Under the pieces are notes generated by a model that saw only the letters and a list, made by a program, of their open reading frames with translations, ran no database searches and was not told the origin of the DNA. The position numbers and the translations under genes are program-made. Positions 21,960-39,218 of a stretch of DNA of 64,000 nucleotides are shown piece by piece (within the stretch, counting starts at the first letter, position 1; every line of letters begins with the position of its first letter). Source of the stretch: Prasinococcaceae sp. CCMP 1430 (lineage: Eukaryota > Plantae > Prasinodermophyta); assembly GCA_013416795.1 (NCBI GenBank), contig RQSC01001165.1, positions 64,741-128,740 of the forward strand. Direction: 5' to 3'.

Positions 21960-22179
21960 NNNNNNNNNNNNNNNNNNNNNNNNNNNNNNNNNNNNNNNNN
22001 NNNNNNNNNNNNNNNNNNNNNNNNNNNNNNNNNNNNNNNNNNNNNNNNNNNNNNNNNNNNNNNNNNNNNNNNNNNNNNNNNNNNNNNNNNNNNNNNNNNN
22101 NNNNNNNNNNNNNNNNNNNNNNNNNNNNNNNNNNNNNNNNNNNNNNNNNNNNNNNNNNNNNNNNNNNNNNNNNNNNNNN
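21960..22179. other. Assembly gap (220 N) following a poly-C tract
   Basis: Run of N. Confidence 1.
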
Positions 22180-22429
22180 CGCTGCGCTCCGCCGCGCGCG
22201 CGCCCCCGATCCCCATCCGCCCCCCCCCTCCCGCACGCGCAGGTGCCGCGGGCCATGCCTCTGACGCGCGTGTGCGTGTGCGTGTTCCCACGGAACAGCA
22301 GGGGAAAACCCGGGGCGGTGAAACGTGCGGCCGCGGCGCGCCGCGCGCGCGCGCGCGACGGCGCCGAAACCTCAACCCATCAGACGGAGCGACGCCCTCG
22401 TCAAAACCCACAGCAACCAGCGCGCATGC

Positions 22430-22467
22430 AAACCCTAAATCACGTGCTTGCGACCTTTTACCCTAAA
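22430..22467 (+). promoter_or_regulatory. Telo-box-like motifs (AAACCCTAA, ACCCTAAA)
   Basis: aaaccctaaat at 22430 and accctaaat at 22460. Confidence 0.35.
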
Positions 22468-22547
22468 TATGGGCGGCGAAGGTCGAGGCGGTTGCGCGCG
22501 GGGGGGGGGCATCTTCGGCGCGCGCGCGCGCCCGGCGCGCGCGCGCG

Positions 22548-23541
22548 CGGCACGCTGCGGCTGCACGTGTACAACACCTACGAGGGCGCGGCCGCCGATG
22601 GCGGGTCCACGGCGGTCACGCTGCACGTCGTCGGACGCGCGCTGGGATGCGAGGGGCGCTGCCCGCTGTCGAGCGTCGTCGAGCGCGTGGAGGTGGGCTT
22701 CGAGCACGCGGGCGCCGGCGGCAGCGTGCCGCGGAGCGCCACGTGGGCGCCCCCGAACGAGGAGGGCGGCAGCGGCGCGTGCGATCGCATTGAGGTGCGG
22801 CGCGAGGTGGCCGGTGGAGGCAGGGAGTGCGTGGCCAAGATCAGGATCTTCCTTCGGCGAGAGCACAAGTACTTCGTCGCGGCCCCAGCGCTCGCGGCGC
22901 TGCTGGGGATTGCAGAGGACACGCACGCGCGCTTCATGCAAGCGCTCTGGTCGTACTGCCGTGCGCGCGGCCTGGTGTGTGCCGACGATCCCGGCGCGGT
23001 GTCGCTCGACGCGCAGCTGCGCGCGCTGCTGTCGGTGGCAGGCGCGCCCACTTCGCATCCCGAGCTGTGCAAGGGGCGCGCAGCGTTCGCCACGGTGTGC
23101 GCGTACGCGGCGGACCTGCTGTCGGAGGCGCCGCCGGTGAGCATAGAGCACCGGCTCGCGACTGGGAAACAGCAACAGCGGGGCGCGAAGGCCAGCAATG
23201 GTGGCGTCGGCGGCGCGAGCCCCGAAAGCTGCTACGACATCGAGGTCGAGCTCGCTGCTCCGAGCGTGCGAGATGCCGACTCCGATGCTGTCGCCCAGGC
23301 TTGCGACGACGAGCTGAGGGCGCTGTGCGGGCGCATCGAGGGCGCCGCGGCCCGTGCCGCCTTCTTCCGCGCGTTCGAGGCATCGCCAGTGGACTTCATC
23401 AACGCGACTGTCCTCAGCCAGGGCAGGGACCTCCAAGTGGCGGCGGCCAGCGATGCGCGTGCGCGCTCTGCGAGCAGCACCGACGGGTTTGCACAACCGT
23501 GGGCGGCGCGAGCGGCAGACGTGTATCTCAAGCGGCGCTGA
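22548..23541 (+). CDS. SMARCD: SWI/SNF subunit SMARCD/BAF60/SWP73 (SWIB domain); 5' part obscured by the gap
   Basis: TLRLHVYNT; SWIB LAALLGIAEDTHARFMQALWSYCRARGL; CYDIEVEL; FFRAFEASPVDFIN..VLSQGRDL; FAQPW. Confidence 0.85.
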
Positions 23542-26271: not shown

Positions 26272-28632
26272 TCACTTTTTCCCGACGTGAAACCACCACT
26301 GCCAGGCGGCGGCGATGAGGCGGTAGAGGACCGTCATGGCTATCAGGACGCCCGAGTTGCCCCAGATGTCGCGACCCGGAACGCCCGCTCCGATGTCGTA
26401 CAGAGTGAGCACATCGTCTCCCGGGACGGACTCCTGGCCTGGCTCGCAGAAGCTCAGCGTGCTGCTCTGGGTGCACGCGAAGCTGGCGCCCTCGAATTCG
26501 TTGGTCATGAAGCTCGCGAAGCTGTAACTGTGAAACCCAACCCAGTGCAGCCATCTCCACCACCAGCCGATCTTGTCGAGCGTGATGAAGAAGCCCTGCA
26601 CCACCACTGCAAGTGTCAGAGGCGCGCGCGGGCGCGCGAGCGGTCAGCAAGGTCAGCGCCCGCGTCTGGCCCCACGAGGCGGCGAGGAGCGCTCGCCTTT
26701 CCTTCCTTCCGTGGATACCACGCTTCGTCGTGCGCGCGGGGGAGCGCGGCGAGGGGCGCGCACGCACTGAAGGTCCCGTAGATGAAAGCACCCACGGCGA
26801 TGCCCACGACGAAAAAGGGCACAATGCTGGCGACAACGAACATCAAGGCCTCAGCGCACGCAAAGGATATGAAGAGGTTCCACACGAAGAAGAAGAAGGC
26901 GTTGACGTCCGAGTTAAGGCCGATGAGCCAGTACGTTATCGACGAGCAGATGAGCGACAGCAGAAAGAGGAAGGGGAGCGATACGATGGCGTTAGCCACG
27001 TTGTACGCGGCCACCCCGTACGTGCCGTTCGCCCGGTCGCGGATGAAGATCAGCTTGTCCTCGAGATACGCCGGAAGGACGCTGATGCTCATGAACACCT
27101 TGAAAGCCGCGATGAAGAACAGGACGTTGACAATGTCTTGGATGTCGTCGGCCTGCGTGCCTATTTGCAGCCACACTGTTCCAATCATGATACCCAGAGC
27201 GATGTACTGCGACGAGCGCGCGGCCACGGGCGTGAGCACGGGGGCGTGGGCGCAGCGCGCGGCGAGTGCGCAGGCCGGGCACATGCGCGCTTGCAGGCGC
27301 GCGTGCGCGCTCGCGCGGCTTTGCACTGCGCCCGGGCGTGCGTACCATAGCAAAGCGGAGCCACATGTACGCTGGGTTCCTCACCACGTTGACGAGCATG
27401 AGGCGGGAAAGCACCACCGTCTGCCATAGAATGGAAGAGTCAGAGCTGCTCCCAGCGGTCAGTAGCGTCCACAGAGGTGCCTGGAAGCCCCTCGCCTCGC
27501 TCTCCTTCAGTGCTGTGTCCACCGCATCGCCTTTACCCGTACTGAGCACGGCGTCGAGCAGGTGCTTCGCCTCGGAGCTGTCGTAGGCGTCCAGAATTTC
27601 ATCGACAGTCTCGTGCTCCTGAAAAGAGGTGTCCACCAGGTCGAGCATCCATTCGGCGCCGCTCGTGAGGGGCGGCACCTTGTGACCGAGTCCGGTGAAG
27701 TGGTCGACGGCGTTGGCCGTCAGGCCGAAGTATGCCGTGCGGCCGCCCGAGAGCAGCAGCAGCCCGTTGCTGAGATCGAAGACCTTCTCGCCCGGCTGAT
27801 GGATGGTGAGCACGGTGGTCGTCCCGAGCGTCTTGGCCACCTCGTTCAGGGAGCGCACGACGTGGAGCGCGGCCGCCGAGTCCAGGCCACTCGTGGGCTC
27901 GTCCAAGAAGATGATGCGCGGGCGCGCGACGAGCTGCACACCGACCGACACGCGCCGCTTTTGCCCACCGGAGAGCCCGCGGAAGAGCAGGCCGCCGATC
28001 TTGGTGTCCGCCTGGTCGTCGAGGCCCATGGCGCCCATCGCGGCTCGCGCCCGCTCGCGCGCCTCCGCCTCGTCCCACGGACAGTACATCCGGGCGTAGT
28101 AGAGCAGCGTTTCGTGCGTCGTGAGCGCCGCCGAGAGGACGTCGTCCTGCTGCACGTACTTGGCCACGGTCTTGAAGGTCAGCTCGTCCTTTGGCTCGCC
28201 GTCGACGGTCACGCCGCCCGTGACCCTCAGCTTGACGCGGTCCGCCAGCGCGTCCAGAAGCGAGCTCTTCCCCGCGCCCGATGGGCCCATGAGAAAGAGC
28301 ACGCAGCCGGGCTTGGCAGCGCCGCTCACACCGTCGAGGATGCGCTTGTAGCCTCCGTCTGGCGTATGCACGCCGAAGCTGATGTCGCGGAAGCGCAGCC
28401 ACGCGCCGCCAGCGCTGAGGCTCTGCGAGCCGCAGCGATGCGCCACGCCGTTCCCATCGAACGACGTCGCGCTCGAAGACGCCGACACAGCCACGGGTGC
28501 ACCGTCGCCGCCTGTCGGCGTGCTGCCGCCGCGGCCGCCAGCCCCGCTCGGTGCGATAGCGCCGTGGTCGCTGCCGCCGCCGACAGTGCCGAGCTCGATC
28601 ACGTGCGTCCCGCCATCGTCACCGGAGGCCAT
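26272..28632 (-). CDS. ABCG half-size transporter (White/WBC type); introns 27207-27345 and 26607-26767
   Basis: Walker A GPSGAGKS; LSGGQKRRV; FLDEPTSGLDS; TIHQP; NBD followed by TMD (RDRANGTY, VQGFF). Confidence 0.93.
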
Positions 28633-29670
28633 GCCGCGCGGCGCGGCGTGGCGCAATCGCGCGTGGCGGCTCCACGTGCACGCTGGGCGGCGCAGCGGCA
28701 AATTGCCAAGCTCTCAGCAAATTGACGGCAATGCCCCGCGCACACGCCTTGCGCGCTGTGCTGCGCCCTCTGGCCGCCGCTCCTCTTCACCCCCCCCCCC
28801 CACCCCACACACCTCTCTCCCTGCGCCACTGTGGCGGCGCCCATCTGGGGCCCCACCTGCGGGCTCCGCCCCGCCCCCGCGCGCCGCGCGCCCCGCTGCG
28901 AATGGCGACCGCGACATTCACCAGATCATTCAGCTGCGCCGCGCCTCACGCCGCCCGCCGCGCCGCATCACGTGACGGCCGCGCCGACGGCGCCCGCCAT
29001 CACCTCGCCGCCCGCCGCAAATAACGTCACATCCACATCACGTCACCGTCACAGCGTTTGATGCACATCAAAGCACATCGCATCGCAACATCACATCGCC
29101 TCGCACGCGGCATTGCCGCAGAGGGGCCCGGGCGCGACCCGCAGTGCGCGATGCGAGCAATTCAATTCAATGAACGGCTGCGTCAGCGGGCCGCCAACGC
29201 CCAGACGGCTGCGCCAAAATGCTATAATAAGAAAAGTAGAGGACATGTAACCACGGGCGACTGAAGTGTTCGATGCGGGCCGATCGCGCCGAGCGGGATT
29301 TTTTGGCGCGCGCGCGGCGATGCGCGTAGGCGCGTGCGCGCACGCGTGCGGGCACACAGCGTGCGACGCCTGCGGCAGGCGGGGTGGGGGCAACGACGCG
29401 CCGCACGTGGGCAGCGGAAGGGGTGGAGGTGGCAGTACGAGGCTGCCGGGGCCGCCAATTCGGGCGCAAGAGGCGCCTCCCCGCCCCCTCGACGCTGCGC
29501 ACGCGCGCACGCGCGCAGAATTGTAACGGCGCGCTCGCGGTCGCGCACCCGAAGCGTGTGGTCAGCCAAGGCGCGGCGCCTCCCTCGCGGCGCGGGGAGG
29601 GACATCGCCAGGTCGCCAGGGGTTGACGCTCCTAGACCGCTGCCGCGCCCCCGTGCCCCCCTCGCCTACC

Positions 29671-32128
29671 ATGCCGTACGACACCACCGACGCGGGGGTG
29701 CGCTGGGCTTTAGAGCTCGCGCAGGCGGTCGTCGCGTGCGAATCTGTCCCTGAAACTCCAGCAACGGCAGCAGCTGCTACCAGACTGGGGGAGCATGGCC
29801 GCGCGGCCCTCGCGGGCATGATTTCCTGCGCTCCGGCCGGGGTGCAGCCGGTCGGAGAGCTGGCTGATCTCGCCCTCGTGTGCACGGTGCAGCCTGGCAA
29901 CAGGCTGGCGTGCCGCGCATGCGTCTCAGGTATGTGGGCGCCAAGATGCTTCTCGCTAGCTAGCTAGCTTTCACACACACGCTTGCGTCTTCCTGCACTG
30001 TAATCGCACCCTTAGCAGCAGCAGCAGCAGCAGCTTCGATGCGATGCCGGCGACCTAACACGTGCAAGCGCGCGTGCACGCGCACCCACTCCATGCCATT
30101 GCCAGGCAAGGGGATGAAGCTCGCGAGCCCGGCAGCGTTATGGCAACACTCCGCAAGCTTTGGGGACGACCAGCACAAGGCCATCCATGAGATGGTGCAC
30201 CTGCTCGGGTGGGAGCAGGGTAGTGCGCGGTCTTTGATGTACGCGCGCGGGCCAGCCCCCGTGAGGGACGTGCCAGACGGTGGCGCGTCCGGCGCCTCCG
30301 CGTCCGAACCGGACGACCCTGATGTGCGCGATCAGCTCAAGGAGTACGAGGCCAACCCCGCTGGAGGGCCAAGGCACGAAGCTCAGGCGGTCGCAAGACA
30401 GTGTGCTGATGGAAAGCTACAATGTCGCGCATGCTTCGGGGCCAGGGCGACCGTGAGCGGCCTGGTTGGGCTTCAGCAACATGCGTCTGCACCGAGGTTC
30501 GCCTCTTGTAGGCGCCATCGTGCGATAAAATTCTGGCTCGAGAGGGCAGGGTACTCACCGGGGTCGATTCGCGTCGAGCCCACAAGCAAGGCCAACCGGA
30601 TTGTACTACCGCCACCTCAGCAGCAGCCGACCACCAAGAGAGCGCGCACGTCTTCGCAAGGTCCAGCAACGCGCACGGAGTTGACTCTCTCGTCCAGCGG
30701 TCACGTGGTGTGGCCACCCGTTGTTGTTATCCACAATCTACCGACCAAAAGCTTCCCTTTGTTGATCGTCGACGCGGATGGGAGCCCGCATGACTTGGCG
30801 GTGCAGCCTTGGCACACCCGCGCGGGTAGGAACGGGTCCACGGTGTGTTGGTTCCACAACGAAGAGGTGAGTGTGATGCCTTTGCCTGCTATGTCGCAGG
30901 ACATGCACACATTCCTGTAGCTGACGACTGCCGATTGCGTGACAAGGAGCGCGAGCTCGCCACTACGAGCACGTCACTGCAAGGGCAGCGGGTGCCGACG
31001 CGCCTTCAATCGCGTCTGTATGTCAAGCAGGACACCAACGAGTTATACGGTGCGCAGGACGTCATGAACATGGTCGCCGCCACGGCGGGACTAGAGGACG
31101 CACGGCTCGCGAAGACTCCGAAACTGCTCTGGCGTGGCGCGAACGGCGCGGCCGACGCACGCGGGTGCGCGCTCTTGTTCTTCGATGATAATGTTGACTC
31201 CCTGGAGGCGATGCGCAAGCTCACGCATGCAGCGGAGACTATGGAAAGCGGTCGCGCGGACTGGGAAGCAGAACAGCGCAGACAAAGGAGTCGGCGAGCC
31301 CCGCCGAACAGGATGTTCGTCTTTCGTGGCAGTCTGGCGGATCTCGAAGACGTCGACCCGCACAGGAGCACGAAATGGGCGACTGCCCCACAGCAGGAGG
31401 TGGAGGAGACGATGAAGAGGATTCAACAGGAACACGAGGAAAGGCGTGAGCAGAAGATCGCGGCGGAACGCGAAGAGGTAGAGAAGCGCTACGCGAATGA
31501 GATGGCGTCCCTCGCGTCGAAAATGGAGTCGCTTGAATCGAGGAAGATGGAAGAGCTCCAAAAACTCGAGCAGTCCTATGGTGCCAAGCTCGCAGCAAAG
31601 GATGGCGAGCTGGCGATGAAGGATGGCGAGCTGGCGAAAAAAGATCAGGAAATCGATGATGTGGAAGAAGGTACGGACGGGCGCAACTAGTCGCGTGCAT
31701 GCGATTGCAAACCCTGAGGAGAGCTCCGTGTTGCGCCCCATTCGTTTCTCTCGGCGTGATCGATGCCATCAGTGCGAGCACGGCTTGCACCTGACAAAGC
31801 TTGGCGCGGACTGTCTCGCCTAACGCCTGGCCATGACTGTCCAAACGAAGAGTACACACACACCACGGTGTTCATCGGCAGGCTGCAGGACAAGCTGGAA
31901 GATATGAAGGCAGCGTATGATCGTGTCGTGGAAGTTGGGACGATCGATTTCTCGGCGCAGCGAAAGAGTGACTTCCAAAGCTTCGCAAAGGATCTGACGC
32001 AGGCTGTCGAAGAACGCCACGAGGAGCGAACACGACGACGACAGCTGTCGCTGGACGCGAAGGCGATGGCAAGGTCAGTACGATTGCCCGCATGGGCGGA
32101 GCACGCGCTGAATCAACGGCGCGAGTGA
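29671..32128 (+). CDS. SGS3-like protein (two zf-XS-like zinc fingers, XS domain, coiled coil); intron 29930-30105, further donors at 30867 and 31671 with uncertain acceptors
   Basis: CRAC-x16-H-x8-H and CRAC-x15-H-x11-H; VVWPPVVVIHN; RGCALLFFDDNVDSLEAMRKL...GRADW...RMFVFRGSLADLE; C-terminal coiled coil. The 3' exon structure is uncertain. Confidence 0.65.
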
Positions 32129-32306
32129 GTAGGAGGGCTCCTACAACGCCGTCGTAATCCAAACCATATGGAACCGCTCAGCAACTTACACAGGACGACC
32201 ACAGCCCTACGCGCCCTCCGTGTACGCGCCTGCTATGTCTGCGGTCGCGTTACCCTCTCTCAGTTCTCCGCCATCCTTATTAGCGGCTCGATGGATCGCT
32301 TGCAGC

Positions 32307-33956
32307 CTAGTCATCCCCAAGGAGCATGATGCTAGGGTGAGGAACGGGGACTCCTTCCTCGAAGGAGCCATCATCGTATGATATGGTGTAGAGTCCGCTC
32401 TTCGCATTGAAGTGCGACAGGAAACCCTCAGACCACTCTTTCTCGCGATTCCAGTATGCTCTCACGCGCTGGCCAACGTAGATGGGCGTGGGCTTGGTCC
32501 TTGGGTGCTTTACCGGAGTGCTCGGTGCATGGTCAGGTGCGCACGCCCTCTTGGTGACGAGCGGCTGCTTTGTCGGCGTGTGCTTTTCGGGCATGACTTG
32601 TATGTCCGGATCGGGGAGCGTGACCTCCTCCTCATCGCCGTCGTCGTACTCGATCTTGTACGCGACACACGAAGACTTGTGCAGCTCACCCCAGTAGCAA
32701 GAGCGTTCGTTTCTCCAGTAAACACGTACCCTGCATCCGACCAGGTCCGCATAATCGCGAGCTGAACTGTCGTGCCCGTCATCAGCAGCGCCTCCCTCCC
32801 ACAGGGTGATCTCCTCGTCGGGCAGGGTCACCTCCTCAGTCTCTCCATCGTCGTAGACGATAGTGTAGGCAGTGAAGGTGGAGCTGGCAAGTGTGCCCCA
32901 AAAGTTCATCCCTTCCTGCTTCCAGAATACGCAGACTCTTGAACCTGCAAGGTCCTCTGCGCTGCAGTGTGGCGACGGCGGTCTTGGCGTCCTCTCGGCC
33001 GCGACAGCAGCAACTGCGGCGTTGCTCTCGTCCTCAGCCGCATATCGCGTGCGCTTGAGGTACCTGAAGCCGTTGTCGGCCTCGTACGTCCCCACGACGT
33101 CGCTCGGCAGTCTCCTCCTTGGCTCCCACGTGCAATGAGACGCGTCATATCCCTTCCACTTGACCAGAAACTCGACAATCTTCTTGGACGGGTTGGATCG
33201 GCGCCCAATGATGCTCTCAACTTCGTACAGGCCGTCTTGTCCCTCTTGCTCGCAAGTCTCCTGACCGTCTCCCTCGTCACGGCCCTGAGCTGTCTCGCCG
33301 AACGTATCTTCTCCTGACTCTGATGTCGAGGAGGACCCTGGGCCTGACCACTCCGGCACAACAACCTGGCCAGGGGCACCCTGCCTGAGGATCTCAGAGT
33401 CGGCCACGTCCGGGAAGGGGACCTCTTCCTCCAGCTCCGCACTCCTCTCAGTGTCCAGGATGCGTACAAGCGGCACCGAGGGTGGAAAGGCCAAATCGGG
33501 CAGCTCGCAGAATCCAGCCGCACTCGGCGCGCTGGCTGGCGCATCATCCCCGATGCCCTGGCGGTCCGCACTTCCGTCGCTCGATCCTTCCAAGCACAGC
33601 ACCAGCGACGACGAAGGCGAGCAGGCATGAACCTGCACTTCACCTCGCACAAAGCCCGTGAAGTCCAATTGGACGTATGCCGCGTTGCGGCTGGCTTCTT
33701 CTGCGAACGTGCGGAAGCCACAGCCAAGTAACAGGCCATGGTCGACCTGCCGGACCGCCACGGGCCAGACACGGCAGGGCCAGTGACCCGCCATCTTGAG
33801 CAGCACGAGCCTCGTGTCTGCTGTGACGCCAGTCACCACGGGGGGTGACTGAAGTGCATCAGCAAGATTGATTGTGACACGCGGCTCGTGCTGCTCAAGA
33901 TGCCGGGTCACTGGCCCTGCCATGTCTGGCCCGCGGCGGTCCGGCAGGTCGACCAT
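32307..33956 (-). CDS. Chromodomain + three Tudor-like domains (putative methyl-histone reader)
   Basis: YEVESIIGRR...EFLVKWKGYDASHCTWEP; three G.RV.VYW...YDDG..E.V.(L/V)P units. Confidence 0.8.
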   Translation of the reverse strand: MVDLPDRRGPDMAGPVTRHLEQHEPRVTINLADALQSPPVVTGVTADTRLVLLKMAGHWPCRVWPVAVRQVDHGLLLGCGFRTFAEEASRNAAYVQLDFTGFVRGEVQVHACSPSSSLVLCLEGSSDGSADRQGIGDDAPASAPSAAGFCELPDLAFPPSVPLVRILDTERSAELEEEVPFPDVADSEILRQGAPGQVVVPEWSGPGSSSTSESGEDTFGETAQGRDEGDGQETCEQEGQDGLYEVESIIGRRSNPSKKIVEFLVKWKGYDASHCTWEPRRRLPSDVVGTYEADNGFRYLKRTRYAAEDESNAAVAAVAAERTPRPPSPHCSAEDLAGSRVCVFWKQEGMNFWGTLASSTFTAYTIVYDDGETEEVTLPDEEITLWEGGAADDGHDSSARDYADLVGCRVRVYWRNERSCYWGELHKSSCVAYKIEYDDGDEEEVTLPDPDIQVMPEKHTPTKQPLVTKRACAPDHAPSTPVKHPRTKPTPIYVGQRVRAYWNREKEWSEGFLSHFNAKSGLYTISYDDGSFEEGVPVPHPSIMLLGDD

Positions 33957-33961
33957 CGCCT
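33733..33961. repeat. Long inverted repeat (arms 33733-33818 and 33876-33961; 57-nt loop)
   Basis: Arms are reverse complements with 5 mismatches in 86 bp; inner 8-bp stem at 33830-33837/33844-33851. Confidence 0.95.
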
Positions 33962-34392
33962 ACAAGGGCAAGGTGAAGTTTGCTGCACTTCCCGTTCCCC
34001 CCAGGCAATTGGTATCAGGAGGCGGGCCAAGCTTTTTTTGGATGTCGACGGTTTTTCGGGCGGGGCCTCTTCGGCGCGGCGTCCACGCGGCGCGCCGACG
34101 CTGAGCCCAATGACCGAGAAATTGCCCGAGTATGGTTCCTCCTTCCCCACCCTCCTCACGCCCGCACGCTGCAGACTCTCACGTGCGCGTGCGCGCCGCT
34201 GCGCTGTGCGCGCTTGTGTGCGCCGCGGCCGCTGCGTTGCGTCGCGCGCGTGGTGTGGTGCATCGCCTCCGCCGCGCGCGCACGCGCATTCACTGTGCGG
34301 GCATTGTGCGATTGAATGCTCATTGTTGTAACCGACGCACGCCGGCCGCGCTTGGCGCGAGTGCCGTCGCGCGCACACTATTGCTCGCGTCC

Positions 34393-34745
34393 GTGCGCGC
34401 GCGCGCAGCGCCAGGGGGACGCGAGGGCGGCAATAACCTTTGTGAGTGCGATGCGCAAGCTCCCCCGCCATCCTCCCATTCTCTGTGCGCGCGCGGCGCT
34501 ACAAGGCCCGCCACCCCTGCCGCCGGGGCGTACACGCCGTCCGCGAGTGCCATCGCCGCGCACGCTAGTGCTCGCGTGAGTCGCGTCGGTGCGCGCGAGC
34601 GCAGCGCCAGGGGGACGCGAGGGCGGCCATACCCTTTTTGAGTTCGATGCGCAAGCTCATCCGCCATCCTTCCATTCTCTGTGCGCGAGCGGTGCGACAA
34701 GGCCCGCCACCCCTGCCGCCAGGGCGTACACGCCGTCGCCGCGTG
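34393..34745 (+). repeat. Diverged direct repeat, two ~150-bp copies, period 196 bp
   Basis: gcagcgccagggggacgcgagggcggc...cgtacacgccgtc at 34405 and 34601. Confidence 0.9.
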
Positions 34746-35338
34746 CGCCCGCACGCCGCCGCCGCGCCCGCACCGGCATTGAGGAGCGCCTCCGTTGGCT
34801 GCCTGCCGCCGTACAGCACGGACCGGCACGCGCGCGCGCGCGCACGAATGCGCGCGTCGCGTCCGTTCCCGGGAGTTCGACAAGATCTCCCGTGGTCATA
34901 TCAGATATAATTATTAACTGATGAAGAGTTTTCATTCGCGTAAAAATTCATATCACATCGAAAGTCGGATTCATTTTGATATAATATCAAATAGCAGAGA
35001 GAATGTTGGTGTGCATCCATCAAATGAGTTCCCATGCGGCTCGCGCCGTGCCAGCGCATCGCCTCAGCCAATGAAAGCAAAGTTTGAGCAGCGTGAGCAC
35101 TCCAAGGAGCGTAGCCCCCTCGGATGTGCGCACTCTATAAAAGTCTCGCTTTTTAAGGGCAAAATATAACGTGGCTCGGGTCAGACATCGCGATGCCGCG
35201 CGCAGGCGCTCGCATGCGCATGTCAACAGCGCCCGCGCCCGCGCTGCGCCTCGAATGCCCGTGTGCACTGCAACCGCGTCGCCGAGCGCACGCAGCGCTC
35301 CCGCGCTCACTTGCAGTGCTGCACGCCCCCGCCGGCCT

Positions 35339-36284
35339 CTAGCCGCTGGGATGCATAGTGAGGACCTCGATGGAGGTCGCTAATCCCATGGGGCGCGCAG
35401 AGGTGGGTCGCCTCCGCTCCTCCGCTTCCTTGTGGGGCTTGTGGAAGAGGGGCTGCGCTACTGACTTGTAGTTGAAGTGGCCCCAGGTGCTGGGTGACAT
35501 CATGAGGCGCACCGAGAGCTTCACCAGGTCGAGTGGCAGGAACCAAATGATGTCCCAGACCCATGCGACGCCCGCCCAGTTCCAGCCTGCGCCGCGCACC
35601 TTCGTGAAGCCCCAGTTGGCATAGACGCCGATGAATGTGGCCACCAGCTGCGCGATGACAAAAGCCAGCGCGAGCAAGATGCTCGGCCGCTGCATGAAGA
35701 AAAAACCCTGCGAGCGGGAGACAAAGATGACTGCCTGCCCGAGGATGGACACTTGCAGGTACACGACGTTGTGAAAGACGAAGCTGTTCACTCCAGAGTC
35801 GTTTTGGGTCGAGTCGCCGAAGCGGATCTCTTCTGCATCCCTCAGGTTGAAGTGGTCGACGAAGAAGTTTGTCTCGCGCGCGACCACCACGAAAACGACC
35901 GTCGAGGCCGCCAGGTACAAGCCGATGACGATGCCTTCAATGAAGAGCTTCCAGAGGCGCCACACGTCCGGGGTGCGGCTCGGGCTGACGCGATCTGTAC
36001 TCACGGTCATGATGGTGCCGTCGTTCAGATAGGCGAGGATGAGGATCATGAATGGTGGCATGTTGAACCGAAAGGCCCACACTAGAACGCTGAATCGCGT
36101 GACAATGCCCACCGTAGTCGCGCACGCATACAGCACGTACGACTTCATCCGCTGAAAGATGCATCGACTCTCGATGATGGCGTCGATGATGACGCTGAGG
36201 CCTTTCTCCGTCAGCACGATGTCGCTCGCCCCGCGCGCGGCGTCGGTGGCGTCGGCAACGGCCACGCCGACGTGGGCCACCTTC

Positions 36285-36320
<36 letters not shown>

Positions 36321-39218
36321 CCCACCGTGAAGCCCAGCTTCTTGAGGGTCTGCACGATGGCGTACTTGTGTTCTGAGGTCCGCGCAGAGTCAGCGCGCCC
36401 GCGCGCGCTGGTGCCCACGCACTCGAGCTGGCAGCGCGGCGCGTGCTCGTCGCGCGCGGCCGTCGCGCGCGCGGGCGCTACCGCGCACCTGGGAAGACTC
36501 CAGCGAAGCCGTTTGCCTCGCGGATGACCGCATCTCGCTGGAGGCCGTCGGGTGTGAGGTCTGGGTGTGGGCCGGGCGCGAAGAGGTCCGGCGAGTCCAC
36601 GAAGCGCGTGCCCATGTCAAGCTGCCGCGCAGTCTCCTTGCCGATGGCAAGCTAGTGCGCATCATGGCGAGACGGGATTTTCAGAAACTGAGTGTGAGCG
36701 CAGTGGCGTCTCGAGCTGCGTCCTACCCCCACTCGCGCTCGCGCACGAACGCATCACGCACCTGGTCGCCGGTGATCATCTTGACCTCCACGCCCAAATC
36801 CTGCGCGCGCTTGATGGTCTCGGCCGTGTCGTGACGGGGCGGATCGAAAACTGGGAGCATGGCCAGCAGCTCCCACTGCTCACCTGGCGCGACAGATGCC
36901 TCGAGCGGCGAAGCGATGCTGCGGAACTCATTTGCGTCCGAGTTGTCTTCGCTGGAAGGCACCTCCACGTCAAGGGCAGGCACGTTGCAGATCGCAACGC
37001 CCAGCGCGCGATAGCCGCGCGTCGCGAGCGCGTCGATGTCACCGTTGACGGTCCCGCGCAGCACGTCCAGTTGCGAAGCGTCCATTCCCAGGAGCTTGCT
37101 AAGCTCGAGCGCCTGTTCGTCGTGCGGCAAGGGAAGGCACAGGTCCAGGATGATCTGTGGGGCGCCTTTGGTGACGCGGTACGCGCGGCCGGTGCGCGTT
37201 TCGAGGAAGGTCGACTGCGTGCGCTTGCCCACCGGATCGAAGGGCATGAAGTGCAACTCCTGTATGCCCGCGCGCGCGCGGCGCTGGCCAAGCTTCAACG
37301 ATGCCGCGCTCGCACTTTTCGTCCCTTCCGGTGCATCGTCTGGCGTGCCGTCGTCCTCGTCCCCCTCGTCCCCTCCAGCGCCCTCCGCCGCCGTCCCATC
37401 GACCGAGCCCTCCCCCAAATTTGTGCTCGCGCCCGTTCCGCCCCCGAGGCGGGCGCTACTCTGGAGGGCCGGTGCAGCCACGTCTGATTCGCCAGAGGAG
37501 GAGTCGAGGTGCACCTCGGGCGCGCCCGTCGCGTCATAGTCCTCCTCGGGCAGCTCACCCAGCGCTTCGACGATCGCGCGGTCAATGGCGTCGGGGTTTG
37601 ACACGCGCGCGGCGCGGGCCGCGTAGAGCAACGAAGCCGCTGGAGTGACGGTGTGTCCGTAACATAGCCCCATCTGCTGCATGAGCGCGGTGTTCACCGT
37701 CAGCCGGTTGAGCGTGAGCGTACCCGTCTTGTCCGAGCACAGCATGTTCAATCCAGAAAGCTCCTCGATGGCGGTGATTCGCGTGACGATGGCCTTCTTG
37801 CGTGCGAGGTGCGACGCGCCGATTGCGAGCGTGACGCTTAGAACGGTTGGCATGGCGATGGGCACCCCTCCTATCAGCAGCACCAGGCCGTTGGAAACGC
37901 CCGTCCTGTATGGATAGTTCATGGCTGCGTACATCGTCACCACGAGCACGATCAAGAAGACAAGGATGTAGACGATGCAAAATCCGCCTATGGCGGTGAG
38001 CAGCTGCTGGAAGTGCGAGCTCGTCTCGGCCGTGTCGACGAGCCCCGCAGCGCGCCCGAAGAACGTGTTCGGGCCAGTCGCCGTGACGGCGGCCTCTGCT
38101 TCGCCTGTTTTTATGGTCGAGCCCGAGAAGACGTCATCCCCGGGCCCGGCGGTGGCCGGCAGCGACTCGCCGGTGAGCGCCGACTGGTCGACTTTGAGTG
38201 GCTCGCCGCCGATTATCTTCGCGTCCGCGGGCACGCAGTCGCCTAATTTCAGGTATATCACGTCGCCGGGGACGAGTGACGCGCTCTGCACCTCCTGCAC
38301 CTCGCCGTCGCGTAGCGCGCGCGCCGTGGGGGCCAAGCGCGCCTTGAGCGCGGCGACGGCGTTCGAGGCCGAGTTCTCTTCGAAGAATCCGATGGTCGCG
38401 TTGATGAGGAGCAGCACGACGATTCCCAGGAAGTCTTCCCAGTCGGGGGGCTCGCCTCCTCCGTTGGCCACCGCGATGGCCACGATGGCCGCCGCTTCCA
38501 TCACCCACGACAGCGGGTTCCACATGAAGCTCAGGAATACGAGGAACTTGTTGCGCTTCTTTTCGGGGACCTCGTTCGGGCCGAAGAGCTCCAAGCGGCG
38601 TTGCACCTCGGCGCTCGTGAGCCCTTTCTCGCGGTCCGACTGGAGCAGGCGCAGCGCCTCGTCGGGGCCCATCTCCTTCAGCATCTCTTCGGGCACGAGC
38701 TCGCCGTGCGAGACGAAGTGCGCTGAAGGGCCGGGGACGGGCGGCGGGGACTCGGCGGAGAGCTCGCCAGCGGTACCATCGGGTGACCCCTTGGTCTCCG
38801 CGGGCTCCACGTGGCCGTGTGGCCATCCCTTCACGCGCGATGCAACACGCGAGGCCTGCGCAAGCAGCGGGCGCGGCGGGCAAGGGGGCGGGCGCGCGTG
38901 TTGGTGCGGGCATGAAGAGGCAGACATCACAGCAAGCAGTCAACGAGTCGGTCTACGTGTCAGCCGACGCGCACCGCAGCACTGCGCGTCGACAAGAGCA
39001 CGGCGGGCAGGCGCGGTGGGTCGCCCTGCGCGCAGCACGCCGACTCGCACCATCGAGCGCGACGGCGACCCCGCGGCCCCGCTTCCGGGCGTGGGTGCCT
39101 CAGCTGCTGACTCCGCCGCGCTCCCAGCCCGCTCCGCCAGCTCGACTCGCGGGGCCTGTTCGGTCGCACGGCGCGCGCCGTCATGGCCGCTTTTGGCGCC
39201 GCCGCCCCGCCTGAACAT
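35339..39218 (-). CDS. Plasma-membrane P3A-type H+-ATPase; introns 38856-39050, 36652-36761, 36373-36488
   Basis: FMWNPLSWVME; DQSALTGESLP; GGVPIAMPTVLSVT; CSDKTGTLT; KGAPQ; DPPRHD; MITGDQ|LAIGKET; FP|EHKY; GDGVNDAPALK; LNDGTIM. Confidence 0.95.

Follow-up and report, generated by a model that had tools for sequence, protein, structure and literature searches.

Plant proteins of the SGS3/IDN2/FDM group carry a CxxC...H...H zinc finger, an XS domain and a long coiled coil, in that order. The XS domain of IDN2 has a crystal structure. Published surveys report SGS3 and the zf-XS domain in streptophytes only (PMC5907777; PMC13069868). SGS3 was not found in chlorophyte, red or brown algae (PMC5907777), and a domain survey of 446 genomes, including one prasinodermophyte, dated zf-XS to streptophyte ancestors (PMC13069868). 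Readers of methylated lysine include HP1/CDY-type chromodomain proteins and Tudor-family proteins (PTM/DIR17-like, SETDB1-type and BAHCC1-type). The RITS/RDRC system of fission yeast (Chp1 chromodomain, Ago1, Tas3, Rdp1) is defined by physical complexes, not by gene adjacency. The locus considered here lies in a 64-kb stretch (the window) of contig RQSC01001165.1 from the marine green alga Prasinococcaceae sp. CCMP 1430. It holds a putative SGS3-like gene on the plus strand (gene A, ~29671–32128) that converges on a minus-strand gene for a chromodomain-Tudor protein (gene B, 32307–33956). The initial annotation proposed that the two genes form a linked, possibly mobile or self-regulating module that joins small RNAs to chromatin reading.

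The results favor, with a probability of roughly two in three, two ordinary, independently evolving nuclear genes that converge by chance in the compact genome of a GC-rich marine green alga. Gene A would be a very divergent protein of SGS3 architecture, with a zf-XS-like finger, an intron-split XS-like domain of the RNA recognition motif (RRM) type and a coiled coil. Gene B would be an independent multivalent methyl-lysine reader, and the hairpin at its 5' side a fold-back self-duplication that overwrote the ancestral start. A 196-bp repeat further upstream would be a local feature, and the palindromes at the ends of the block would be sites of one factor or a coincidence. The strongest lead of the locus is the possible SGS3/zf-XS relative, and the proposed island looks like an ordinary neighborhood.

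Comparison with environmental contigs bears directly on the proposed linkage. Two TARA ocean metagenome contigs (L002 and L003) have 97–98% DNA identity to the locus, belong to the same species and carry the gene pair together. A contig from a relative (L001) has 91% DNA identity over a stretch that starts inside the gene B coding sequence and ends 124 nt beyond the stop. The 3' untranslated region (UTR) of gene B is conserved in L001 up to a shared TGTAA, and similarity ends a few bases beyond. TGTAA acts as a poly(A) signal in green algae. The copy at 32190–32186 is plausibly the poly(A) signal of gene B; there are 20 TGTAA sites in the 64 kb and none on the plus strand in 31600–32900. The next gene in L001 is a convergent, leucine-rich open reading frame (ORF) of 1,211 residues without a counterpart anywhere in the window. 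Because a different gene follows the gene B 3' UTR there, adjacency is not conserved in L001. The linked module therefore found no support, since the pair occurs together only in the same-species haplotypes and gene B has a different neighbor in L001.

The SGS3-like gene

Gene A is putatively modeled with 3–4 exons. The coding frame shifts twice, and introns are therefore needed. The exons were searched one by one. The model is as follows.

29671–29930, plus strand: putative exon 1, from the ATG at 29671 to the donor CAG/GTATGT (translation)
29931–30106, plus strand: putative intron 1, acceptor at 30106 or 30016, both in frame (one 4-nt and two 3-nt indels relative to L002 in 29955–30013)
30107–30866, plus strand: exon 2, ending at the consensus donor GAG/GTGAGT (translation; substitution pattern relative to L002)
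30867–31057, plus strand: putative intron 2, with a firm donor and 31057 as its outer limit (in-frame acceptor AGs at 30946–31057)
31058–31670, plus strand: exon 3, with a Pfam XS match at 31145–31288 followed by a charged coiled-coil region
31851–32128, plus strand: putative last exon in the frame of exon 3, stop TGA at 32126–32128 (open frame 31760–32125, in-frame GT..AG options)

Gene A is judged to be coding because change in exon 2 is mostly synonymous and at third positions, and because frame-breaking indels relative to the haplotype are confined to the proposed introns. Exon 2 differs from L002 by 14 synonymous and 4 non-synonymous changes, distributed 0/3/15 over the codon positions (15 of 18 at the third). 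A 4-nt deletion at 29955–29958 falls within putative intron 1, and a 1-nt deletion at 30906 in both L002 and L003, which marks a non-coding spot, falls within putative intron 2. The frame change associated with intron 2 is required between 30830 and 30920; the two obvious acceptors, 30899 and 30920, would not keep the frame. Exon 1 has 3 synonymous and 4 non-synonymous changes relative to L002 with no third-position bias, and its coding status is uncertain. Neither exon 1 nor the last exon gains support from the substitution comparison. The intron before the last exon, with a donor AAG/GTACGG at 31671, and the last exon itself are both uncertain. One metatranscriptome contig covers 31897–32129, the region of the last exon. 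Another (30755–30957) crosses the exon 2 donor unspliced and may represent DNA or pre-mRNA.

The kinship of gene A with the SGS3/XS family is suggested by domain content and order. Exon 2 encodes a zf-XS-like finger (~30408–30560) with the pattern CxxC-x15-H-x11-H, a low-complexity linker and an XS-like first-strand motif, WPP..V.HN (~30700–30750). Pfam XS (PF03468) matched exon 3 with an E value of 0.009 over profile positions 50–97 of 113, on the conserved core of XS. Downstream, a charged heptad-like region (31380–31670) has weak matches solely to coiled-coil families and is helical in the partial model, so that a coiled coil is present after the XS-like domain. A language-model feature search of the ESM Atlas (7.7 million clusters), made with non-overlapping queries from the two exons, returned the same families. 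For the XS part of exon 3, the two nearest clusters were XS (0.87, with 184 of 256 features shared, and 0.80). For the part of exon 2 that runs from the finger to XS, zf-XS/XS clusters stood at ranks 1–3 and 9 (0.84), the nearest zf-XS clusters sharing 181–183 features. The tool rates scores of 0.84–0.87 as leads only, and counts of 181–184 of 256 are within its typical range for true family members.

Gene A thus compares with plant SGS3, IDN2 and FDM in several respects. The order of finger, XS-like domain and long coiled coil is the same, and the XS-like domain begins with the same WPP..(I/V)..N motif and has the same G(R/K)xDW core. In contrast to the plant proteins, gene A falls under the Pfam thresholds, and ordinary sequence searches with it reach no plant member. 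Its first XS strand is followed by an insert of ~40 residues, its XS-like domain is split by an intron, and a possible second finger lies upstream, without detectable similarity to the first. That second finger would pair a CxxC in exon 1 with His residues of exon 2. A duplication of the finger within gene A was considered and rejected, as BLASTP of the two proposed halves gave no alignment and only the pattern is common to them.

Several results weigh against the proposed kinship and gene model. The XS match of exon 3 alone, at 16.8 bits, does not reach the gathering score of 25, and Pfam zf-XS (PF03470) had no match at E <= 10 in the exon-wise scan, in which exon 2 drew no Pfam match. Exon 3 differs from L002 by 3 synonymous and 6 non-synonymous changes, so that constraint is not evident there. 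Searches of Logan, which covered assembled contigs only, yielded no credible splice joints, transcript ends or small RNAs at the locus. It could be argued that gene A is no relative of XS/SGS3 proteins and encodes a lineage-specific coiled-coil protein with chance XS-like motifs. The missed Pfam thresholds and the modest standing of the language-model scores fit such a protein, as do the failures of conventional searches. With exon 2 as query, phmmer matched no more than a same-species ORF and a 1,900-residue low-complexity protein (repeats, according to Pfam) among 1.84 billion representatives, and word-based homologue searches with exon 2 and the XS part of exon 3 found same-species ORFs only. 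Exon 3 had no relevant match in a PDB sequence search and no locus in a metagenome scan. The partial structure model for the XS region in exon 3 shows a helix-strand-strand-helix-strand order and a mean predicted confidence (pLDDT) of 55.5; this poor model had no Foldseek match in the PDB at E <= 0.001 and a best Z of 3.5 in a wide VIA-align search. Chance resemblance is nevertheless unlikely, because two non-overlapping pieces independently reach the same rare family pair with 181–184 of 256 features, the Pfam match spans the conserved core of XS and the domain order is that of SGS3. It is therefore likely that gene A is a very divergent member of the SGS3/XS family. The SGS3-like assignment of the initial annotation stands as far as the sub-threshold XS match, the zf-XS/XS neighbors of two exons and the domain order carry it, and falls short in the two Pfam profiles. 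By analogy with plant SGS3 and IDN2, the protein may bind double-stranded RNA and assist an RNA-dependent RNA polymerase (RdRP).

An SGS3-like gene in this alga may be earlier than published surveys place the family. If confirmed on the spliced protein, it would shift the origin of a family of RdRP helpers back to the base of the green plants, and it would be a gene that threshold-based domain surveys miss. A bolder proposal is that Prasinoderma, which branched before the split of chlorophytes and streptophytes, has a true SGS3-type protein (zf-XS, XS and coiled coil) that partners the RdRP and Argonaute of the alga, in a genome reportedly devoid of Dicer. The Dicer family was scored as gained after Prasinoderma branched off and was reported missing from its gene-family survey (PMC7455551). 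In the fullest version of this proposal, gene B, with the hairpin at its start codon and the shared palindrome, would be an endogenous trigger or target of the pathway. The proposal is a long shot; if true, a silencing factor regarded as born in streptophytes would date to the root of green plants.

Two short repeats were noted within gene A. A single copy of a short element (core ACTGTAATCGCACCCTTAGC, preceded by a GCTTGCGTCTT part) occupies 29997–30016 in intron 1 and ends at the possible acceptor. The same element occurs in both orientations just upstream of the gene B ATG in L001 (12–36, 66–90, 137–165 and 168–195). It may belong to a class of small elements in Prasinoderma genomes, either interspersed or located at intron ends. 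In the coiled-coil part of exon 3, a perfect 21-bp tandem duplication (31598–31637) encodes the 7-residue repeat KDGELAM/KDGELAK and is also present in the TARA haplotype.

The chromodomain-Tudor gene and its hairpin

Gene B and the repeats on its 5' side have the following coordinates.

32307–33956, minus strand: gene B, a single ORF of 549 codons (Pfam; PDB matches; ratio of non-synonymous to synonymous substitution rates, dN/dS)
33105–33227, minus strand: chromodomain (Pfam Chromo)
~32799–32951, 32589–32747 and 32319–32483, minus strand: three Tudor-like repeats (Pfam PTM_DIR17_Tudor, three stretches)
33733–33818, minus strand: proximal arm of the inverted repeat, within the part of the ORF that encodes the conserved N-terminal domain (repeat search)
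33876–33961, minus strand: distal arm, an inverted copy of the coding arm, holding both candidate ATGs at 33956 and 33923 (repeat search; comparison with L001)
34385–34737, no strand: tandem repeat upstream of gene B, period 196, 1.8 copies, 91% (repeat search)

The encoded protein consists of a conserved N-terminal domain, an acidic linker, a chromodomain and three Tudor-like repeats. The assignment of a chromodomain with three Tudor domains in the initial annotation was borne out, as profiles of both domain types match above threshold. Pfam Chromo (PF00385) matched at 1.6e-13 (50.8 bits against a cut-off of 25.1), and PTM_DIR17_Tudor (PF21743) matched three stretches at 1.3e-10 (41.4 bits against 27.2). 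The Tudor_5 and BAHCC1-like Tudor profiles also exceed their cut-offs. A PDB sequence search returned the chromodomains of CDYL, HP1, cpSRP43 and LHP1, the best at 6e-9. By inspection, Tyr244, Trp267 and Tyr270 stand at the aromatic-cage positions known from HP1, and each Tudor-like repeat has conserved aromatic and YDDG motifs. Gene B has no chromoshadow, SET or other catalytic domain. It is predicted to encode a multivalent methyl-lysine reader with an HP1/CDY-type chromodomain whose cage is intact.

The canonical chromodomain and the Tudor-like repeats are the features that gene B shares with HP1/CDY-type and Tudor-family readers. The combination of chromodomain, three Tudor-like repeats and N-terminal domain sets it apart from them, and among 5.8 billion proteins is found elsewhere only in a protein cluster from a relative (P0002, 72%). 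That cluster and one from the same species (P0001, 99%) are the two clusters of full-length relatives in this set. The N-terminal domain has no Pfam match, and its structure model (pLDDT 39) is unusable; judged by eye, it may form a B3-like barrel. A metagenome scan with the chromo-Tudor part returned 33 loci, nearly all of them chromodomain-only matches, with no orthologues and no synteny information.

Relative to L001, dN/dS is 0.36 in the C-terminal chromo-Tudor part and 0.26 in the N-terminal domain. From these ratios gene B is therefore judged to be functional and under purifying selection. Its coding sequence has 6 differences in 1,647 nt from the environmental haplotype. Synonymous divergence between gene B (32307–33956) and L001 (203–1939) is uneven, at ~1.0 in the N-terminal domain and 0.16 in the chromo-Tudor part, and the linker has large indels. 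Gene conversion could account for the unevenness, as could a mosaic origin of the sequence or chimeric assembly of the contig.

The inverted repeat, reported as an 86-bp hairpin in the initial annotation, was found with 86-nt arms that are 94% complementary and separated by a 57-nt spacer. Apart from low-complexity sequence, it is the sole long inverted repeat in the 64 kb. Folded as RNA, it has a predicted free energy of -224.9 kcal/mol (z = -23). The distal arm supplies a species-specific N-terminal extension of ~22 residues. L001 has no such repeat, and its ATG lines up with the inner end of the distal arm. The simplest reading of the hairpin is that part of the gene B coding sequence was duplicated locally as a fold-back and that the copy replaced the ancestral start region. 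Each haplotype has 5–6 mismatches between the arms, partly at different positions and with no clear compensation, and the duplication appears to predate the point at which the sampled haplotypes diverged. A transcript of the entire repeat would form a stem that blocks scanning or serves as a source of double-stranded RNA. Since gene B is under selection, the distal arm would be excluded by the choice of start site or by splicing, or else the stem would be regulatory. Rfam and tRNA scans of 27–37 kb gave only sub-threshold matches to microRNA (miRNA) precursor models, all of them to the hairpin; the closest were long precursor models at 35.5 and 29 bits, against gathering scores of 90 and 68.

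Long-hairpin loci of plants and Chlamydomonas that give rise to miRNAs or small interfering RNAs, formed by inverted duplication of a target gene, likewise have a long, near-perfect hairpin from an inverted coding copy. Unlike those loci, the inverted copy here lies in cis at the gene's own 5' end, contains the start codons and is known from sequence alone, in an alga reported to be without Dicer (PMC7455551). The inverted self-copy over the start of gene B offers a clean example from nature of how a fold-back duplication remodels the 5' end of a gene. The 196-bp-period repeat was also found as annotated; it has no further copy in the window and is a local tandem duplication.

Palindromes, composition and the arrangement of the pair

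The remaining features of the block itself are its end palindromes and the space between the two stops.

29057–29072, no strand: TTTGAT-N4-ATCAAA, in the divergent promoter region of an ABC transporter gene (minus) and gene A (plus)
34975–34991, no strand: TTTGAT-N5-ATCAAA, in an AT-rich stretch between the 3' end of a P-type ATPase gene and the upstream region of gene B
32129–32306, no strand: inter-stop space of 178 nt, with the minus-strand TGTAA, the probable poly(A) signal of gene B

The similar palindromes described at both ends of the block in the initial annotation coincide exactly with these TTTGAT/ATCAAA sites. There are two such palindromes in the window, against 0.00 expected from shuffles, and among AT-rich 6+6 palindrome words TTTGAT alone occurs there more than once. 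Both are kept in L002, the haplotype being 97% identical. One factor may bind both of them, or their resemblance may be an after-the-fact coincidence. GC-rich inverted pairs at both ends were also considered as meaningful palindromes and rejected as generic, (GC)5-like motifs occurring 311 times in the window. A third TTTGATG, followed by GATGCACA, lies on the minus strand at 35018–35035, 30 nt past the right palindrome, and resembles the TTTGATGCACA of the left palindrome. The 7-mer TTTGATG has 6 sites against 2.6 expected and is not clearly over-represented. Between the plus-strand TGA (32126–32128) and the end of the minus-strand ORF (32307), the stops are 178 nt apart, close to the ~180 bp first described for the tail-to-tail genes, and this spacing holds only if the last plus-strand exon (31851–32128) is real.

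The lower GC content described for the ~6-kb block is present. Sliding GC content and GC content at third codon positions (GC3) show both the block and its two genes to be lower than their flanks. The window has a GC content of 68.1%, in line with the 69.8% published for Prasinoderma coloniale (PMC7455551), and its lowest 3-kb block starts at 30401, within the annotated block (0.593, ~3 standard deviations under the mean of 0.680, the standard deviation across the window being 0.029). The 5,935-nt span 29057–34991 has a GC content of 0.628, under that of 96% of windows of the same size. GC3 is ~0.70 in both genes compared to 0.78–0.84 in three flanking ORFs. The low GC reflects charged proteins with low GC at second codon positions (GC2) and a weaker GC3 bias, and foreign origin is not needed.

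Independent neighbors have to be weighed against two accounts that make the block a unit. One is a functional coupling of the pair, by shared palindromes or overlapping 3' ends, with the 5' hairpin of gene B feeding an SGS3-like small-RNA pathway and so tying small RNAs to chromatin reading. The palindromes occur in the two upstream regions only, and L002 retains them, although their spacers are unequal (4 versus 5 nt). The probable poly(A) signal of gene B lies 117 nt into the inter-stop space, which makes transcript overlap plausible, but close convergent neighbors are common in a compact genome, and adjacency is not conserved in L001. The hairpin is predicted to be extremely stable as RNA, but it is absent from L001, its mismatches among haplotypes lack clear compensation, and the gain of the Dicer family is placed after the Prasinoderma split (PMC7455551). 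Coupling is, on balance, improbable, and no support was found for a self-regulating module. With RITS/RDRC the locus shares only the idea of a chromodomain reader and an RdRP-helper-type protein in one genome; that system is held together by physical association, whereas the adjacency seen here is not conserved. No homology to the partners Chp1, Tas3 or Rdp1 emerged, though no search was directed at them.

A mobile or foreign island, that is, a 5.9-kb low-GC block bounded by palindromes that entered the site between the ABC transporter gene and the ATPase gene, is the least probable account, verging on negligible. It would be in keeping with the lowest-GC block of the window, the similar palindromes at both ends and the lack of detectable relatives of either gene outside the genus in very large databases. 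On the other hand, no transposase, integrase or reverse transcriptase is among the Pfam matches of the block. The ends have only the 6-nt half-sites TTTGAT/ATCAAA in common, with no duplicated flanking bases that would mark a target site, and a second copy is absent from the window. The suggestion of mobility thus gained nothing from the comparison. At 0.70, GC3 retains a strongly host-like character, the intron boundaries are standard GT..AG, and the different neighbor of gene B in the relative points to ordinary rearrangement. Two further points count on the same side as those listed for gene A, against two ordinary neighbors. The adjacency test rests on one relative, and L001 is a 6-kb metagenome contig that is possibly chimeric or a paralogue. 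The palindromes lie precisely on either side of the gene pair and have no counterpart elsewhere in the 64 kb; the rough post hoc chance of this is 1–2%, so that co-regulation is possible.

The flanking ABC transporter and ATPase genes were recovered with Pfam, in agreement with the initial annotation.

26992–28701, minus strand: ABC transporter ORF, nucleotide-binding domain first (Pfam ABC_tran 5.5e-23 and a weak ABC2_membrane_7 match)
36723–38930 and 35339–36418, minus strand: P-type ATPase, split over two ORFs (E1-E2_ATPase 5.2e-47 and Cation_ATPase_N on 36723–38930)

Divergence between the window and L002 varies widely along the locus. Per 100 nt, it amounts to 7.3 substitutions at 28790–29670, where indels come on top, and to 1.5–2.7 in exons 1–3 of gene A. 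Over 31671–33560, non-coding sequence included, the value is 0–0.4. The pattern resembles that of a mosaic produced by recombination, or of a sweep that took place recently around gene B. Elsewhere in the window, GC content falls sharply at 22000–22570 (to 0.454 over 500 nt), next to inverted repeats rich in (GC)n at 22323–22356 and 22535–22568.

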